Shown here piece after piece: positions 3,658 through 54,274 of a stretch of DNA of 64,000 bases (position 1 is the first letter of the stretch; each line of letters opens with the position of its first letter). Under the pieces are notes generated by a model. It ran no database searches and was not told the origin of the DNA. It saw only the letters and a program-made list of their open reading frames with translations. The stretch lies in the sequence record NC_062581.1. One strand, 5' to 3'. A program made the translations under genes and the position numbers.

Positions 3658-5289
3658 CTAAGGGTTGACTCTCTGGCCCGCCAAGGTAAAAAATGTCGAT
3701 ACTACATCAAGAGGAATCAAATGCTCAAAACGTTCATGAAACTTTTCAGCCATCGGACTATCACATACTGGACAGTTCCATGAAGGAATAGCAATCATGC
3801 ACATGATGGTGTCATCGATGAATTGCAGTACAGCAGCTTCAAAAGGAGCAGCGTATTTCTTATCCGACATTACATCAGACAAATGCGCATCAATAACTTC
3901 TTCGTCTTCAGTCAATAGTTCTTCTGTAGACAAAGCATCTTCACGTTGGTAGATAGCATCAACCCAATGCGAGTACTGACGGGCACCGGTAATAGCACCG
4001 AGACGATCAATATAAGCGTTACGGTTAGCATCCCCTGGAGCTTCGTTAAAAGCACTGTGGGTAGAATCAACTACGCCGTCAATCCATCGGTTGCCAGCAT
4101 CTCGTCGTTCCGCAACTGAAGGTACACGTAAGCGAAGTCCAATATCATCAAACCACTTAATAGGCTTTCGACCAAGAGTAGTGTCGCGCGCGTAATCATC
4201 AAGTTCCTCTGAACGGAGTTGGCGACCAAATCGAACATGCAGCAAATCTTTCTGCCGTTCGTTTAGTTGGGTATGGTCAAACCAAGTCAGTGAGAACATA
4301 TCGAGTTTTGCTTCTTCGACGTGCGTACACTTAGATGGATCAGCAATACAAGTGTGACGATAGTTAAAACCACCAGGGAACATTGTGGAGGCTAGACCGT
4401 GGTGTAGGATTGGTTCATCCAAAGCACTCAGACGGTGTTCAATGTCAGCTGGAGTACTAGCTACCATGTTGGTGTGGGTAATACACTGCATTGCCAAATC
4501 AGTCAGTGCGTTGTTATACACTGCAATACGGTTAGAGAAACCTTGGCCTTTGGTATCACGACCCAAACGAACGGCTACGTTTTGTAGACGCTGAATCATG
4601 TTAGCTACTTCGGTATTTGTTGGAGTACGCAAACGAATCCAGATACCGGTGTGTGGCATAGGGAATTCGTGGGTAGCACCCATACCCGACTTACGGTTTA
4701 GGTAAGCGAGCAAATCAGAACGAGCTGGTTTATCACCTAGTTTAATCTTTGGACGAGACGGACCGATCTTACGACCACCGTGTTCAAAGAACTGAACCCA
4801 TTCAGAACCTTCACGATAAGTGGCACGCATTGGTGTCTTATTCATGTCGGTGTGTTCAATAGCAGCCTGTAGAGATTCTAGCCATTCTAGGTCGCGTTGC
4901 TCAGTGGTAATTTCACCACCTTCAATATCAGCAAACAGACGGTTATGTACACGCAGCACTTGTTCAAACGTTTCAGGGTTTTCACGCATGAAACCAATGA
5001 TAGCAGCAGCTGCAGGAATCTTTGGTGAATCCACAGGACGGTCAATACGGAAATTGACTTTCGGTTGTGATGGCGTAAAAGGAACTAGTTCTTCTTCAGA
5101 ACCTTCTTGCTCTTCTTCGTCATCTGTAACCGGTGTGGCTGGAGCTACTGGATCAGTAGCCTCAACCTTAATTTCTTTTTCTTCTGCTACATCGTAAGAC
5201 GGAGCAGATACCGTTTGTTGAAAATGTACTGCAAGAGCAGCTGGAATTTCTTCAGCGTACTCTTCATCATCTTGAATATCGTGAGACAT
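3658..5289 (-). CDS. Conserved phage protein with Cys motifs, possible baseplate hub assembly protein
   Basis: 543 aa; acidic N-terminus; HTC..C and CPVC motifs; two R(T/V)P(T/S) segments. Confidence 0.6.
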   Translation of the reverse strand: MSHDIQDDEEYAEEIPAALAVHFQQTVSAPSYDVAEEKEIKVEATDPVAPATPVTDDEEEQEGSEEELVPFTPSQPKVNFRIDRPVDSPKIPAAAAIIGFMRENPETFEQVLRVHNRLFADIEGGEITTEQRDLEWLESLQAAIEHTDMNKTPMRATYREGSEWVQFFEHGGRKIGPSRPKIKLGDKPARSDLLAYLNRKSGMGATHEFPMPHTGIWIRLRTPTNTEVANMIQRLQNVAVRLGRDTKGQGFSNRIAVYNNALTDLAMQCITHTNMVASTPADIEHRLSALDEPILHHGLASTMFPGGFNYRHTCIADPSKCTHVEEAKLDMFSLTWFDHTQLNERQKDLLHVRFGRQLRSEELDDYARDTTLGRKPIKWFDDIGLRLRVPSVAERRDAGNRWIDGVVDSTHSAFNEAPGDANRNAYIDRLGAITGARQYSHWVDAIYQREDALSTEELLTEDEEVIDAHLSDVMSDKKYAAPFEAAVLQFIDDTIMCMIAIPSWNCPVCDSPMAEKFHERFEHLIPLDVVSTFFTLAGQRVNP

Positions 5290-11640: not shown

Positions 11641-12038
11641 TCATTTAGTAATTCACACAACGCACGTGCTTGAGATATGTCAGTGTTAGCAAACCTATCA
11701 GACAATGTGTAATCCATTAATGCACAAGCTTCTGAAAGCTCACGCATGAGGTCTGGGTTTAGATCCGCCCAGATGACCCATAGCTTCTTGTATTCACCCC
11801 AGGTATCAATAGATCGATCTACAGGGGGCTTTCCTTTACCCAGCTTCCAGTCGGAAGAGCCGGGAGCTATACCTTTTACATCACATTGGTAATGAGCTTC
11901 GATGGTGCGTCCATCAGGCATGAGAGCGAACATCGCAGAGAAACGTTTATCTCCTTGCGATGAACACTCATATCCATCATACCGCTTCCACTGATACAAT
12001 CTTCTTTTCAACAGGTACCGAAGCAGCAATGGCTTCAT
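11628..12038 (-). CDS. Hypothetical protein, remote NADAR/YbiA-like
   Basis: FSAMFA..DGRTIEAHYQ..VKG and NPDL..L...LSD..SQARAL.ELL echo the NADAR layout; start uncertain, overlaps the PolB gene end. Confidence 0.5.
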   Translation of the reverse strand: MKPLLLRYLLKRRLYQWKRYDGYECSSQGDKRFSAMFALMPDGRTIEAHYQCDVKGIAPGSSDWKLGKGKPPVDRSIDTWGEYKKLWVIWADLNPDLMRELSEACALMDYTLSDRFANTDISQARALCELLNERTY

Positions 12039-13932
12039 CCAAAGTAGGTTCAGCCATGCCGATGTGTTCCATGAATGCCAACAGCAATGTATCCATACGT
12101 GGAGCGTTCATGATTTTTTGTGTAATCTCAATAGCATTAACACGCCCTGCTGTTAAGTTAACACCTGCTTCACGTCGCCACAGTTCCGACACCCCTTGAA
12201 TTGCAGAGAACTCCATTACCGTAGTTTCACGAGCAATGTTTAGAATCTGCGATACGTTTGGATAAGTCGATACAATGTCCAAGTCAGCGACGTGAACATA
12301 AATCAGCGTGTGATAGTTAGGTAGGTCTTTAACACACTTGATACCATGTTGTCCCGCCATGTACGACGGTAACGTGATAATCCAATCCCGGTGAGATACA
12401 ACATACTGATCGAGTTCATGAACCATCTGATCAGAACTAGAACCAATTACCTGACCACGCTTCAAATACCAGAAGTGCATGTCATCAACCAACCGTTTTG
12501 GGTTGGATGCAAAGTTCTTATAATCCGAAGATTTAGAGAACAATGTAATTGATCGACTAAGGTCATTAATCTTTTCGTCCAGTTGTTCTAGACGCATGCT
12601 GTCAATAATGTTGTAAAGACCGTATTTGATCTTGTGCTTGGTTTGCATCTCACGGTGCCATTCGATACCGTTGAGGTTAGCTACTGCTTCAAAGTCCAAC
12701 TTACCAAAGTCAACTTTAAGACCAACCGTGTCACCGATCTGCGCTGCATCTAAACAGTGAACAGGTTGTTCATTAATAAACCAGTGCGGAAATGAACCCG
12801 GTGTTTCATTAAGTTTCTTTTCGCACTTCTTTAAGAAAGCTAACAGATCGCCATCATCCTTAAGTTCAGTTTCTTCATTAACACTTAGCTCTTTACCCAA
12901 GATGTAGTTTAGAGCATAAGAAGGTTCTTTACCCTTAGCCAAACGCGTTACACGATACGTTGACATTGAGTCGATACATTGGAACGTAGCAGGTGCTGTA
13001 ATCCAGTGCCATTGATCTTGTGGACCTCTAGACTTCGATACACCCGAAGCCGTCGTCATCATTGCCTGGTCTTTCTTAAAATGGAAATGACGATAGTTTG
13101 CAGGTACAGATGCATCCGAAAATACATCTTTAGGATCAATACCGTAATCGTCCAAAGTTTTCAAGATTCGACTCATGTCGAACTCAATGTTCCAAAAAGC
13201 AAAGAAGTCAGGCTTCCATTCATGCAGTCGCTTGAAACATTGAATAACAATATCAGCTGGAGTTTTAACAACTTCAACTTCAATCTTGAGATTACGTCCA
13301 TGCATCAAAGCTTTAAGCTCTGGTAACGATTCCATCTCACGATAAGTCTCACCTACCGGATCTGCAATGTCATGTACCCAGTCTTTTAGATAAGCCAAAT
13401 AAACGTGTTCTTTATGTGTAACGGACATGCAGATGATCTGACCATCTTTATCAGATTCGTACACGTTTGTTTCAATGTCGCCACCTGCCACCGTGTTACG
13501 CGAAATCAAATTCGGTGAACGTTGCTGATAATCATTTTTCAAGCAGCAAGTGGAGCTTACATCAGAACCGTAAAGATATGGACTACGTGCTAAGTTACGC
13601 AGCCGTGGATTAGGACCTTGAGAATAGTCCCCTAATGTTTTTGCAATGCTACGTGCCAGATTGACTTGAGTTGATTTATACTTAGTCAGATTTTCTAGCA
13701 ACTCGTAGTCTTTCTTTTCGCTGTGGTTACGACGACCCTTTTGCGTAATGTAATAGGTACGTTCGTAATCAATCCACGGAACCAGACGGCTAAATGTCTT
13801 GCCGCCTTTTAAATGTACTACTTCTTTAACAAAGTGAGCATCATGCTGTTTGCCGAACTGATCCGGTACGTACGTGATGTGCTTTGCTTCACGCCCGATA
13901 ACGTCTTCCGGATTAAACTCAATCGTCGACAT
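11977..13932 (-). CDS. Family B DNA polymerase N-terminal part with 3'-5' exonuclease (phiKZ gp82-like)
   Basis: ExoI GDIET, ExoII WNIEFD, ExoIII YNIID, Pol motif A DLDIVSTYPN; no motif B or C. Confidence 0.85.
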   Translation of the reverse strand: MSTIEFNPEDVIGREAKHITYVPDQFGKQHDAHFVKEVVHLKGGKTFSRLVPWIDYERTYYITQKGRRNHSEKKDYELLENLTKYKSTQVNLARSIAKTLGDYSQGPNPRLRNLARSPYLYGSDVSSTCCLKNDYQQRSPNLISRNTVAGGDIETNVYESDKDGQIICMSVTHKEHVYLAYLKDWVHDIADPVGETYREMESLPELKALMHGRNLKIEVEVVKTPADIVIQCFKRLHEWKPDFFAFWNIEFDMSRILKTLDDYGIDPKDVFSDASVPANYRHFHFKKDQAMMTTASGVSKSRGPQDQWHWITAPATFQCIDSMSTYRVTRLAKGKEPSYALNYILGKELSVNEETELKDDGDLLAFLKKCEKKLNETPGSFPHWFINEQPVHCLDAAQIGDTVGLKVDFGKLDFEAVANLNGIEWHREMQTKHKIKYGLYNIIDSMRLEQLDEKINDLSRSITLFSKSSDYKNFASNPKRLVDDMHFWYLKRGQVIGSSSDQMVHELDQYVVSHRDWIITLPSYMAGQHGIKCVKDLPNYHTLIYVHVADLDIVSTYPNVSQILNIARETTVMEFSAIQGVSELWRREAGVNLTAGRVNAIEITQKIMNAPRMDTLLLAFMEHIGMAEPTLDEAIAASVPVEKKIVSVEAV

Positions 13933-14004: not shown

Positions 14005-15276
14005 ATGATTAATCAGCTAACCATGGGAAGCACACAGATGCTACAACAATTTACTATTTCTAACGAGCTCCTTTCCGTCGATGTATCGCGAGAGCTTGGT
14101 AAGTTAGTACAAGAACAAGTTGCAAAAATGCGTAAGTCGTATGAGCTTACAGGAGCCGTCAGTGGTGAGGCATTAAAAGGCCTTGGCGAAATTGTAAACA
14201 TGACTGGCTTGAACGTAGAATTCATTTCCACCCCTGGGCCTTACCCAGACGCGTGGATGATGACATTTGATTACATTGGTCACCAAGGAACTACGTGGTC
14301 TAAGTTTCGTACTACAGAAGCTATTGTATCTAAACAAGGATTGAAGTACGTTACCAAAGTTGATCTGAAGAAACTAAAAGTCAGTGGGCCAATGGTAGAC
14401 GAATTCAAATTTCGGTCAAACTGTTCTGGTGCTTTCTTTAACCCTGCTAATGGTTATACAGATCAAGAGATTACCGGTATCATTCTTCATGAATGTGGAC
14501 ATGCCTTCAACCTCTTCGTTACGCTTAGTGATTACATCTATCTCAACTACATGTTGACCGATGGTATTGATGTACTGATGGGTAACAAACGTAACGAATA
14601 CAATCTGGAAGTCCTTGACCACACTTGGATGGAAAAGAACATCGATAAAGATCTGCGTGAAGAGTACGCCAACAAGCGTAGCCCTGACCAATGTCGTCGT
14701 GCTATTCTTTCCACATGGAAGAAAGCTCCACGCCACTATCTTTTTGATAACCCAGGTTCAGCTCATAAACGAGAAGAACAAATTGCGGATCTGTTTGCTA
14801 GCCGTCTAGGATATGGTCGAGCAGTTATCACTGGTTTAGATCGGATGTATAAATCATTCGGTATGGACACTGACATGCGTGCATCGTGGATCGGTAACTT
14901 GGTTCGTATGGCCGTAGCTATTGCATTCCTTCCGTTTACCATTCTTTGGTTGATGACTGTATCCGGCACTAACGATTTTAACTTTGCTGGTCGTTACGAT
15001 AATCCTAAAGAACGTATTGTTAAAATGCGAATGGATTTGATTACACAACTGAAGAATATTAAAGACCGTTCTTTGGTGGGTGGTATCCAAGCTGACATCG
15101 ATGCGCTTGATGCATTACTGAAAGAATATCATGTGGGTAAGAACTTGTACGATTACATGGCTGAACTGGCATCGCCACAGCTGCGTCAAGAACGACGTTT
15201 GATCACCCATGAAGAAAACCTCGAATCCCTGCTCAACAACGATTTGTTTGTTGAAGCGTATCGTTACAAAGCCTAA
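14005..15276 (+). CDS. Virion head protein with HEXXH metallopeptidase motif (phiKZ gp84-like)
   Basis: ILHECGH, REEQIADLFASRLGYG, one hydrophobic segment, early SNE site; real start may be 14023 or 14038. Confidence 0.75.
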   Translation: MINQLTMGSTQMLQQFTISNELLSVDVSRELGKLVQEQVAKMRKSYELTGAVSGEALKGLGEIVNMTGLNVEFISTPGPYPDAWMMTFDYIGHQGTTWSKFRTTEAIVSKQGLKYVTKVDLKKLKVSGPMVDEFKFRSNCSGAFFNPANGYTDQEITGIILHECGHAFNLFVTLSDYIYLNYMLTDGIDVLMGNKRNEYNLEVLDHTWMEKNIDKDLREEYANKRSPDQCRRAILSTWKKAPRHYLFDNPGSAHKREEQIADLFASRLGYGRAVITGLDRMYKSFGMDTDMRASWIGNLVRMAVAIAFLPFTILWLMTVSGTNDFNFAGRYDNPKERIVKMRMDLITQLKNIKDRSLVGGIQADIDALDALLKEYHVGKNLYDYMAELASPQLRQERRLITHEENLESLLNNDLFVEAYRYKA

Positions 15277-15287
15277 GGTAAAAGACA

Positions 15288-15728
15288 ATGAGAACTGGTT
15301 TCCTTATTGCTCGCATCATGAAAGATCTGAGCTCTCCTTCTAACAACGATCGTTTGGCTCGTGCCATGTTCGTTGCTAACGCTGTTGGTTTTCACGTACC
15401 ACTGATGTTAGACAAAACCCCTGCTGAATGTGCTGAAGCACACACAAAGTTTTTCCGTAGTATTTGTGGCTCGGTTAACGAGAACATTGCACTGGATACT
15501 AAGAAAGCACAAGACGTCTTCAATGACATCATTCGGATTCGTTATGAACTAGTTCAAGGTGTGATTGATCCTTCTCTGGTACAAGCTGCTTTGACTTCTA
15601 CCACGGCTCAAGATGGTCTTACTCGTTCTGAGTTCTCCATGGCCGAATGGTTAGCTTCGCGTCCAGACTTTATTCGTTGCCAGCTTGAAATTGCAGACGT
15701 ACTGAAGCAAACAGCTGCTGAGGAATAA
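15288..15728 (+). CDS. Hypothetical protein in structural operon
   Basis: TAAGG SD; tightly packed between structural genes. Confidence 0.7.
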   Translation: MRTGFLIARIMKDLSSPSNNDRLARAMFVANAVGFHVPLMLDKTPAECAEAHTKFFRSICGSVNENIALDTKKAQDVFNDIIRIRYELVQGVIDPSLVQAALTSTTAQDGLTRSEFSMAEWLASRPDFIRCQLEIADVLKQTAAEE

Positions 15729-15730
15729 AT

Positions 15731-16045
15731 ATGCCGGACTCGAACGGAATCCCTCGCATTACAAAAGCGCATGTTGAGGGGCTTATCGTTGATGAACATG
15801 TGCGCTGGATCAGTGAAACACGTACTACGATTTGTTCCGTCCGTTTGTGCAATGAGCAGACTATTACTGAATCTGCTACTTGTGGTGCCGACCAAACATT
15901 CGACCCTCTCCGGGGTCGTTCTGTTGCCCGTAAGAAAGTTCTAAATGAAATCATTAAATACGAACATTACTTACAGCGGCAACGTATCTACGAAGCCAAG
16001 AAGGAAAAAGAAAATGGATCAAATCGAGAATCCACTCCTGCCTGA
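15731..16045 (+). CDS. Phage Gp49/Sf6 gp66-family protein (candidate nucleotide sponge)
   Basis: TICSVRLCNEQTITESATC...FDPLRGRSVARKKVLNEIIKYEHYLQRQ fits the recalled T.C.L.L.NG..V.G.SAC..P..FD...G...AR......EGY.L pattern; GAGGA SD. Confidence 0.65.
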   Translation: MPDSNGIPRITKAHVEGLIVDEHVRWISETRTTICSVRLCNEQTITESATCGADQTFDPLRGRSVARKKVLNEIIKYEHYLQRQRIYEAKKEKENGSNRESTPA

Positions 16046-17303
16046 CCCGAACACTACTCCGCCAGACGTGGAAGTTTCGAATGATCTATTGGAAGATCCT
16101 GTTGATTACCCAATTGATAATCAGGCTGAACTAGTTACACTTATTGCAGAACCATCTCCACAGACTATCGACGTCATTGGTAGCACACTGCAATCGGAAT
16201 TAGAAATTGCAGTAGAAGCTATTAATGATCTACTGGATTTGCAAAGCACCATTAAAGCACATGGTGTTAGTTCACACGACATGGCTGGTTTAGTATCTAT
16301 CCAGAAACGTTTGATTGACAATAACCTATCCTTACCTAGTGCTGGCTTAGAAGACTTCCAAGGTTACTTTACCCCTGAGCGTTCTTTGTTGAACCAACAG
16401 GTCAGTTTGGAAAATATTGGTAAGTCTGCTCTGTTGGTAATTAAAGCTTGGATCAGTAAATTGATTGAACTGGTTATGGCTGGCTACCGTTGGGTTAAAG
16501 GCTTGAAACAAAAGCATGTTGTTCTGGATAGTCAGTTGGTCAAAGCCCGTGACATCTTAATTGAAGTTCGTAAGATCTACGTTAAGATGAAAGCATTGAA
16601 TGGCCCACTGGGTTCTGAAGCAGTCAAGACGACCAATGAACTTAGTGAAACAGCCTTGGTTACTTCATCGCTAGATCGTAACATGGTTACTCTGTACGGC
16701 TTCTCTCATGAAGGTGCTATTCGTTCAGTTAAGACTCTTTATGAATCTGCATTGCGTACTAGTTCTTGTGTTGCTGATCGAGTAACTGCTTTAGCCAGTG
16801 TGATCGATAATAAAGACACCCCTTCAGATGATGGCCTTAGCGCACTTAGTGATCTGGCTACACTAACCCAATCCATAGACGAACTATTGATTGTCTCCGA
16901 TGACGATGAATGGCTGTTGAAAGAACTGGGTAATGACTTCTGGGATGCTGTTGATAAATTCCGTAAAGTACAAGTCATTGATTTTGATAAGTTGGTTAAG
17001 TATTACGGTACTACTGCTGATGCATTAACCCGTATTCGTTCTGTCAAGATTGATGATCCACAACAAGCTGAACGTGCACAAGTAATCATTGATTCGATTA
17101 CTCAGGCTGTCGCCAATCTTAACCGACTGGTTGACTTCTTTAATGCTGCTGCCCGTTCACAAGTAAGTGCAGCTAAGACTTACCGTGAATACTACGCCAG
17201 CGCTATTGAAATTCTAATGTTGGATTTTAAATCACAAAATCCTTCAGCTGAATCGGCAAAAGAAATGAAAGCATTGGTTGCACAACTTCAAGCTTTGAAG
17301 TGA
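16014..17303 (+). CDS. Virion head protein, inner-head paralogue-like (phiKZ gp86-like)
   Basis: Acidic N-terminal region, AVE/GLE/SLE sites, then KAWISKLIELV amphipathic helix; start at MDQIEN. Confidence 0.75.
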   Translation: MDQIENPLLPDPNTTPPDVEVSNDLLEDPVDYPIDNQAELVTLIAEPSPQTIDVIGSTLQSELEIAVEAINDLLDLQSTIKAHGVSSHDMAGLVSIQKRLIDNNLSLPSAGLEDFQGYFTPERSLLNQQVSLENIGKSALLVIKAWISKLIELVMAGYRWVKGLKQKHVVLDSQLVKARDILIEVRKIYVKMKALNGPLGSEAVKTTNELSETALVTSSLDRNMVTLYGFSHEGAIRSVKTLYESALRTSSCVADRVTALASVIDNKDTPSDDGLSALSDLATLTQSIDELLIVSDDDEWLLKELGNDFWDAVDKFRKVQVIDFDKLVKYYGTTADALTRIRSVKIDDPQQAERAQVIIDSITQAVANLNRLVDFFNAAARSQVSAAKTYREYYASAIEILMLDFKSQNPSAESAKEMKALVAQLQALK

Positions 17304-17343
17304 CATAAACGCCTCTCCCTTAGGGAGAGGCAATATGCCGTTA
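17301..17343. repeat. Hairpin element, 43-bp copy also at 53876-53918
   Basis: TGACATAAACGCCTCTCCCTTAGGGAGAGGC(A/G)ATATGCCGTTA, one mismatch between copies. Confidence 0.9.
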
Positions 17344-41252: not shown

Positions 41253-41286
41253 TTTAAACCATTTAAAAGCCTATATTACAATAGTG
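41253..41286 (+). promoter_or_regulatory. Early promoter
   Basis: TTTAAA 41253, TATATTAC 41272-41279, GTG 4 nt later. Confidence 0.85.
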
Positions 41287-41489: not shown

Positions 41490-41523
41490 TTTAAAACATT
41501 TAGAACGCTATATTACAAACGTG
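41490..41523 (+). promoter_or_regulatory. Early promoter
   Basis: TTTAAA 41490, TATATTAC 41509-41516. Confidence 0.85.
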
Positions 41524-43829: not shown

Positions 43830-43863
43830 TTGAAAAGAATTAAACCCCTATATTACAAACGTG
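43830..43863 (+). promoter_or_regulatory. Early promoter
   Basis: TTGAAA 43830, TATATTAC 43849-43856. Confidence 0.85.
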
Positions 43864-46028: not shown

Positions 46029-46062
46029 TTTAAAACATTTAAAAGGCTATATTACAATCGTG
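46029..46062 (+). promoter_or_regulatory. Early promoter
   Basis: TTTAAA 46029, TATATTAC 46048-46055. Confidence 0.85.
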
Positions 46063-54226: not shown

Positions 54227-54253
54227 TTTAACTTTATTTTAGATCTATATTAC
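54227..54253 (+). promoter_or_regulatory. Early promoter (variant)
   Basis: TTTAAC 54227, TATATTAC 54246-54253; lacks downstream GTG. Confidence 0.7.
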
Positions 54254-54274
54254 TACTTAGCTAAGGAGAATATA

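Follow-up and report, generated by a model that had tools for sequence, protein, structure and literature searches.

Acb4 proteins are small phage-encoded sponges that act against CBASS by sequestering its cyclic dinucleotide signals. The founding member, gp1.3 of Bacillus phage SPO1, is 96 amino acids (aa) long and forms a tetramer with four molecules of 3'3'-cGAMP bound (PDB 9E4W); the family was defined as PF13876 and comprises 1,331 homologues (Chang et al., bioRxiv 10.1101/2024.12.30.630793). The characterized members form homotetramers with pockets between the protomers, and these pockets hold 3'3'-cGAMP, cUA and cAA. Tetramer models of the published homologues reach an ipTM of at least 0.9. 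3'3'-cGAMP was bound by all eight of the homologues tested, and cAA only by those from phages of Gram-negative hosts (Chang et al.). Sponge activity is also known for N4 Acb4, for gp59 of Pseudomonas phage Ab09, which is an Acb4-Sequestin fusion, and for the Pm86 fusion. The Ab09 protein binds 2'3'-cAA, its Acb4 domain forming a tetramer. Panoptes, a system that senses sponges, is triggered by both N4 Acb4 and Ab09 Acb4-Sequestin. In jumbo phages the only anti-defence protein described, according to a 2026 review, is phiKZ Tad1 (gp184), which the review reports as virion-delivered; gp184 carries a structural-protein annotation. Our literature search found no paper joining Acb4 with phiKZ, PhiPA3, 201phi2-1 or the Chimalliviridae.

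A gene of this family was characterized in Pseudomonas phage Psa21 (MK552327; genus Tepukevirus), a nucleus-forming jumbo phage of the phiKZ type with a genome of 305 kb; its host is Pseudomonas syringae pv. actinidiae. The window analysed is a stretch of 64,000 nt, and window positions, used throughout unless stated, equal record positions minus 62000. An intact open reading frame of 104 codons at 15731-16045 (+) coincides exactly with the GenBank coding sequence PSA21_95 (record 77731-78045), which is labelled 'hypothetical protein'. A GAGGA ribosome-binding site (Shine-Dalgarno) can be read from the sequence at 15720-15724 (+), 6 nt 5' of the ATG, where it overlaps the end of the preceding gene, a homologue of phiKZ gp85. 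PSA21_95 is a real protein under purifying selection, its dN/dS in comparisons with four metagenomic relatives being 0.07-0.16; the head genes on either side give equal values, and their GC content is similar to its own (45.7%).

The initial annotation had placed the product in the N4 Gp49/Sf6 gp66 family and had proposed, subject to confirmation, that Acb4 belongs there. Both points proved correct. PSA21_95 matched the PF13876 profile (Phage_gp49_66; N4 gp49 / Sf6 gp66) over positions 1-81 of 82 with 44.4 bits (E 2.4e-11), against a gathering cut-off of 27 bits; SPO1 Acb4 itself scored lower, at 35.5 bits. PF13876 was the only significant family for the protein, and a profile scan of the whole Psa21 genome revealed this single copy. 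PSA21_95 also matched phrog_322 (E 7.6e-20), and Sf6 gene 66 was reached from it directly by tblastn (E 2e-5). The exact protein (UniProt A0A481W5G3) is already among the homologues in Table S3 of Chang et al., as are the proteins of Phabio, Noxifer, PS119XW and 201phi2-1, so that the family assignment has been published, though as a table row. We conclude that PSA21_95 belongs to the Acb4 (PF13876) family. It is a catalogued member of a known family, to which its genomic context adds a modest amount of new information.

The link to SPO1 Acb4 runs through the broad family profile; direct pairwise searches fail. A phmmer search of PDB sequences with PSA21_95 gave a chance match only (E 1.3), a shallow profile of 15 close relatives had no match in the PDB, and alignment of that profile with SPO1 Acb4 by hhalign reached a probability of only 6%. 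A seed alignment of diverse members recruited at least 7,994 family clusters. A profile of 77 family members, built without SPO1 Acb4 and thus a founder-independent test of homology, had 9E4W as its sole PDB match (E 1.5e-6). The match of another alignment to 9E4W was discounted because that alignment contains the SPO1 sequence. PADLOC and NCBIfam scans returned nothing for PSA21_95, and a search for related loci in viral contigs yielded only four near relatives.

The predicted structure is consistent with this assignment. An AlphaFold2 model of PSA21_95 computed with the family alignment as input had a mean pLDDT of 85.4 and consists of a helix (residues 12-18), three strands (19-27, 32-39 and 44-50) and a long second helix (59-96). 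This is the fold of the Acb4 monomer in 9E4W, a three-stranded antiparallel sheet between N- and C-terminal helices. The best ten Foldseek matches were all chains of 9E4W (probability 1.0, TM 0.58-0.73, rmsd about 2 Å), and VIA-align superposed 74 residues on 9E4W with Z 9.2 and an rmsd of 2.6 Å. SPO1 Acb4 and PSA21_95 thus share a Pfam family, a size class (96 versus 104 aa) and a helix-strand-strand-strand-helix core, but they are only about 19-24% identical, and SPO1 Acb4 is acidic (pI 4.95) whereas PSA21_95 is basic (pI 8.5). N4 Acb4 and Ab09 gp59 are, like PSA21_95, PF13876 members from phages of Gram-negative hosts; Ab09 gp59 differs in being fused to a second sponge domain, PSA21_95 having a single domain. 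We consider it probable that PSA21_95 is a cytoplasmic, homotetrameric Acb4-family sponge directed against CBASS, carried as a long-resident accessory cassette of the head operon and made in the middle or late phase of infection.

The signal that such a sponge would bind was addressed by mapping the 11 ligand contacts of SPO1 Acb4 onto PSA21_95 through the family alignment. In SPO1 Acb4, K36 reads the guanine edge, K81 touches the phosphate backbone and F48 stacks on the guanine. The two basic residues have counterparts in R31 (R in 14 of 15 clade members) and K76 (K or R in all 15), and F62, N63 (a backbone contact in SPO1) and L89 are likewise kept as F57, D58 and I86; the replacement of V56 by C51 is possibly conservative. 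The stacking aromatic residue is lost, F48 being replaced by Q43, which is invariant in the Psa21 clade. E49, Y57, I66 and T70 are not kept either, their equivalents being T44, G52 (also invariant in the clade), R61 and V65. About half of the 11 contacts are therefore identical or conservative. Many of these positions differ between SPO1 Acb4 and the Sf6-like members as well, and a second chimalliviral clade has a third set of residues (H, R, V and A against Q, T, C and G in the Psa21 clade). Since the contact residues vary across the family in this way, they would tune specificity rather than define membership. The five replacements in PSA21_95 suggest that 3'3'-cGAMP may not be its ligand.

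This leads to the first alternative, that PSA21_95 is a sponge whose pocket has been retuned to another signal (for example cAA, a cyclic trinucleotide or a TIR-derived ADP-ribose signal), and not a cGAMP-type anti-CBASS protein. The substitution of F48, E49, Y57 and I66, with Q43 and G52 fixed in the clade, would be expected from such a change, as would the differing H, R and A of the other chimalliviral clade, and ligand range does vary in the family, cAA binding being restricted to members from phages of Gram-negative hosts and Ab09 gp59 binding 2'3'-cAA. Nevertheless, the diverse homologues tested, eight out of eight, still bound 3'3'-cGAMP, and with contacts that vary family-wide specificity is not readable from sequence alone. 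We regard such a retuned pocket as unlikely.

PSA21_95 also differs from the described members in where its gene lies. The SPO1 Acb4 gene is part of an early cluster of small genes, with binding activity by about 15 min, and N4 Acb4 and Ab09 gp59 occupy an anti-signalling hot spot of N4-like phages. Such a context, an early small-gene cluster or an anti-defence island, is typical of Acb4 genes but does not define them; PSA21_95 lies instead in a structural operon, inside a gp84-gp85-gp86 head block that is probably expressed late. The block is co-directional and begins with PSA21_93 (14038-15276, +), a homologue of phiKZ gp84 identified by annotation, a match to phrog_2767 and synteny with phiKZ gp84, 201phi2-1 gp145 and PhiPA3 086. 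PSA21_94 (15288-15728, +; PhiKZ_gp85, PF25615, E 3.3e-66) follows, its stop codon 2 nt 5' of PSA21_95, and PSA21_96 (16014-17303, +; PhiKZ_gp86, PF25617, E 1.3e-149) comes after. Pfam describes the proteins of PF25615 and PF25617 as head-vertex-binding. PSA21_95, at its 3' end, overlaps the beginning of PSA21_96 out of frame by 32 nt (16014-16045, +), in agreement with the initial annotation and with the annotated start of the gp86 homologue at 16014. Only the low-confidence C-terminal tail of the PSA21_95 model is covered by this overlap (mean pLDDT 69 at residues 91-100, and below 50 at residues 101-104).

A 10-bp GC-rich hairpin found by a terminator scan at 17310-17332 falls between the convergent stops of the gp86 (17303) and gp87 (17341) homologues. 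It likely marks the end of a gp84-gp85-acb4-gp86 transcription unit and likely acts as a terminator in both directions. A hairpin within the PSA21_95 reading frame (15901-15918) was taken as a chance occurrence, seven having been seen against 7.6 expected.

An early-promoter motif, CTATATTACAA, was derived from the early region of Psa21. Exact copies on the plus strand lie at 2417-2427, 41271-41281, 41508-41518, 43848-43858 and 46047-46057, with a one-mismatch copy at 54245-54255. The motif sits within a longer conserved AT-rich box (TGATTTAAAACATTTAAAA...CTATATTACAA), which is evidently the early (virion RNA polymerase) promoter of Psa21 and near the phiKZ early type. No copy of the motif was found at window positions 2428-41270, or within 13 kb upstream of PSA21_95. 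The middle and late promoters of phiKZ are not predictable from sequence; a scan for sigma-70 promoters, which fell below shuffle expectation, is of no relevance to a phage that uses its own RNA polymerases. The T before the PSA21_95 ATG creates a TATG (15730-15733), the core of phiKZ late promoters, probably by coincidence, the motif being only 4 nt long.

Because the genes leave no space for signals between them, no early motif lies nearby and no terminator is seen until past gp86, PSA21_95 is likely co-transcribed late with the head genes. Late expression, as the initial annotation had proposed, is thus plausible, and we infer it from the 2-nt gap, the 32-nt overlap and the distribution of the motif and hairpin. 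Transcribed with the head genes and translationally coupled, PSA21_95 would most probably be made in mid or late infection, not early. A homotetramer of the protein would then sequester CBASS signals in the P. syringae cytoplasm, such that the defence effector is never switched on. Phage DNA is shielded in the phage nucleus, but signal-based defences still act in the cytoplasm, where PSA21_95 would work; made alongside the head proteins, it would counter CBASS-type signalling in the late phase of infection. Such timing might, for some systems, be too late.

The arrangement is not peculiar to Psa21. The same gene order (gp84, gp85, a PF13876 gene, gp86 and then a convergent gp87) is preserved in PS119XW (Pawinskivirus), Phabio (Phabiovirus), 201phi2-1 (Serwervirus) and PhiPA3 (Miltoncavirus), and in all four, as in Psa21, the small gene overlaps or abuts the start of gp86. 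By tblastn, the gene was also found in RVTF4, Noxifer, Viktualia and PS119XW-like phages, where it fills this slot as well. The slot is thus occupied in five or more named genera of Pseudomonas chimalliviruses. The orthologues PhiPA3 gp088, 201phi2-1 gp147, Phabio gp131 and PS119XW gp091 resemble PSA21_95 in slot, family and coupling to gp86, but differ from the Psa21 clade at the SPO1 contact positions. Identity of PSA21_95 to the other chimalliviral copies (32-40%) tracks that of the flanking proteins (36-40% for gp84 and 38-51% for gp85), and in a quick tree, of limited sample and with long branches, the chimalliviral copies, these four orthologues and the Psa21 clade among them, fell on one side of a branch with an SH-aLRT of 97.

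The slot is empty in two relatives. In phiKZ the junction between gp85 and gp86 is 10 nt long, and no PF13876 match was found anywhere in the genome. In D6, the closest named relative of Psa21 (protein identity 78% for gp84, 81% for gp85 and 67% for gp86), the gp85 stop and the gp86 ATG are likewise 10 nt apart (D6 locus 5229-5245 versus window 15726-16016), and the N-terminus of gp86 starts MDQ as in Psa21. The indel between Psa21 and D6 is essentially the acb4-family reading frame alone, which therefore behaves as a clean cassette. Identity tracking, the tree and the GC content together point to long vertical residence in the gp85-gp86 slot with independent losses. The cassette would accordingly have been long fixed between the two head-vertex genes and cleanly lost in phiKZ and D6.

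Such a fixed position might also reflect a part in building the head, PSA21_95 having been co-opted as a non-structural assembly helper, for example a chaperone of gp86, that no longer acts as a sponge. The gene's retention in the gp85-gp86 slot of no fewer than five named genera, its divergence at the same rate as its neighbours and its overlap or abutment with the gp86 start in every case would all suit this role. However, phiKZ and D6 keep gp85 and gp86 without the small gene, which is therefore dispensable for this head, and phiKZ has no PF13876 copy elsewhere. In addition, 201phi2-1 gp147 was not found in virions, and no family member is known in such a role. An assembly helper is, on this evidence, very unlikely.

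The initial annotation had further suggested that the protein is perhaps packaged. This was not supported by the record of 201phi2-1, in which the label 'identified as virion protein by mass spectrometry' is attached to gp145, gp146, gp148 and gp149 but not to the PSA21_95 orthologue gp147, the one gene of this five-gene block to lack it; the test rests on the orthologue's record, the 'structural' labels in Psa21 deriving from homology only. A literature search on 201phi2-1 gp147 found nothing. PSA21_95 lacks the prohead-protease motif [SAG]-x-E, but a motif so short carries no weight. PSA21_95 is probably not a virion component, to judge from its orthologue. A sponge delivered with the virion to neutralize signals at the next infection, in the manner reported for phiKZ Tad1, is for these reasons hardly to be expected: the embedding of the gene among head genes and the reported injection and structural annotation of gp184 would favour it, but gp147 is unmarked, the PhiPA3, PS119XW, Phabio and Psa21 copies are annotated as hypothetical and not as structural (in Psa21 by homology only), and a 1:1 sponge present in few copies would have little capacity. 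An RNA- or ribosome-binding protein with a dsRBD-like or hibernation-factor-like fold that modulates late translation is scarcely plausible, for although PSA21_95 is basic where SPO1 Acb4 is acidic, and the VIA-align runners-up were an RF2 domain (Z 7.5), HPF and protein Y (Z 6.1-6.4), dsRBDs (Z 5-6) and Rv2632c (within Z 5-7), all of these lie below 9E4W, Chang et al. report the same background matches for Acb4 itself, and PSA21_95 has no Pfam match to dsRBD or HPF.

The favoured reading, a cytoplasmic sponge, can be set beside the Tad1 of related phages. Like the sponge proposed here, phiKZ Tad1 takes up nucleotide signals and comes from a Pseudomonas jumbo phage that forms a nucleus, but its family is unrelated to Acb4, it is a hexamer and it is reportedly injected. 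Residues 111-230 of phiKZ gp184, its C-terminal half and presumably the part that forms the Tad1 sponge domain, have conserved counterparts in 201phi2-1, PS119XW, PhiPA3 and Phabio (E 1e-32 to 1e-43). Psa21 and D6 match gp184 only over a short N-terminal piece (residues 61-109) and therefore seem to be without Tad1. The Psa21 match, at genome positions 206922-207065 (outside the window), contains two stop codons. The idea that Tad1 and Acb4 replace each other was rejected because four phages (PhiPA3, 201phi2-1, Phabio and PS119XW) carry both. No Tad2 or Sequestin match was detectable in Psa21, the Sequestin search having been run without a positive control. PSA21_95 is thus the only recognizable sponge in Psa21 among the four families checked (Acb4, Tad1, Tad2 and Sequestin).

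CBASS, Thoeris and type III CRISPR are among the few defences that reach nucleus-forming jumbo phages, because signal-based defences act in the cytoplasm. An Acb4-family gene fixed in a head-operon slot of at least five genera is therefore a candidate for a second anti-defence protein of jumbo phages after Tad1, and the phages that carry it include the laboratory models PhiPA3 and 201phi2-1. What is new here is that the slot is the same in several genera and cleanly empty in phiKZ and D6, together with the differences in the pocket and the evidence against packaging. That the patchy distribution fits the known cost of sponges, the triggering of Panoptes, is speculation. A further proposal takes these features together: chimalliviral Acb4 would form a functionally distinct branch of late, head-operon sponges with a remodelled pocket (Gln or His for Phe) that binds a signal other than 3'3'-cGAMP, with repeated losses driven by Panoptes-type counter-selection, and the sponge would appear at the same time as the capsid proteins to which signalling defences respond. 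We hold this combination to be unlikely. Psa21 has been proposed as a biocontrol phage for kiwifruit canker, and PSA21_95, as the probable anti-CBASS sponge that we favour, could bear on its host range against P. syringae strains that carry CBASS; Psa21, with the gene, and D6, without it, form a natural pair for comparison.

The gene on the other side of the head block, PSA21_92 (11977-13932, -), is likewise labelled hypothetical in the Psa21 record. The genes at the corresponding position are labelled DNA polymerase in Phabio and PhiPA3 (similar to phiKZ gp82), and in 201phi2-1 the label is exonuclease-domain-containing. PSA21_92 diverges from the gp84 block, and both units should have their promoters in the roughly 105 nt that separate them.
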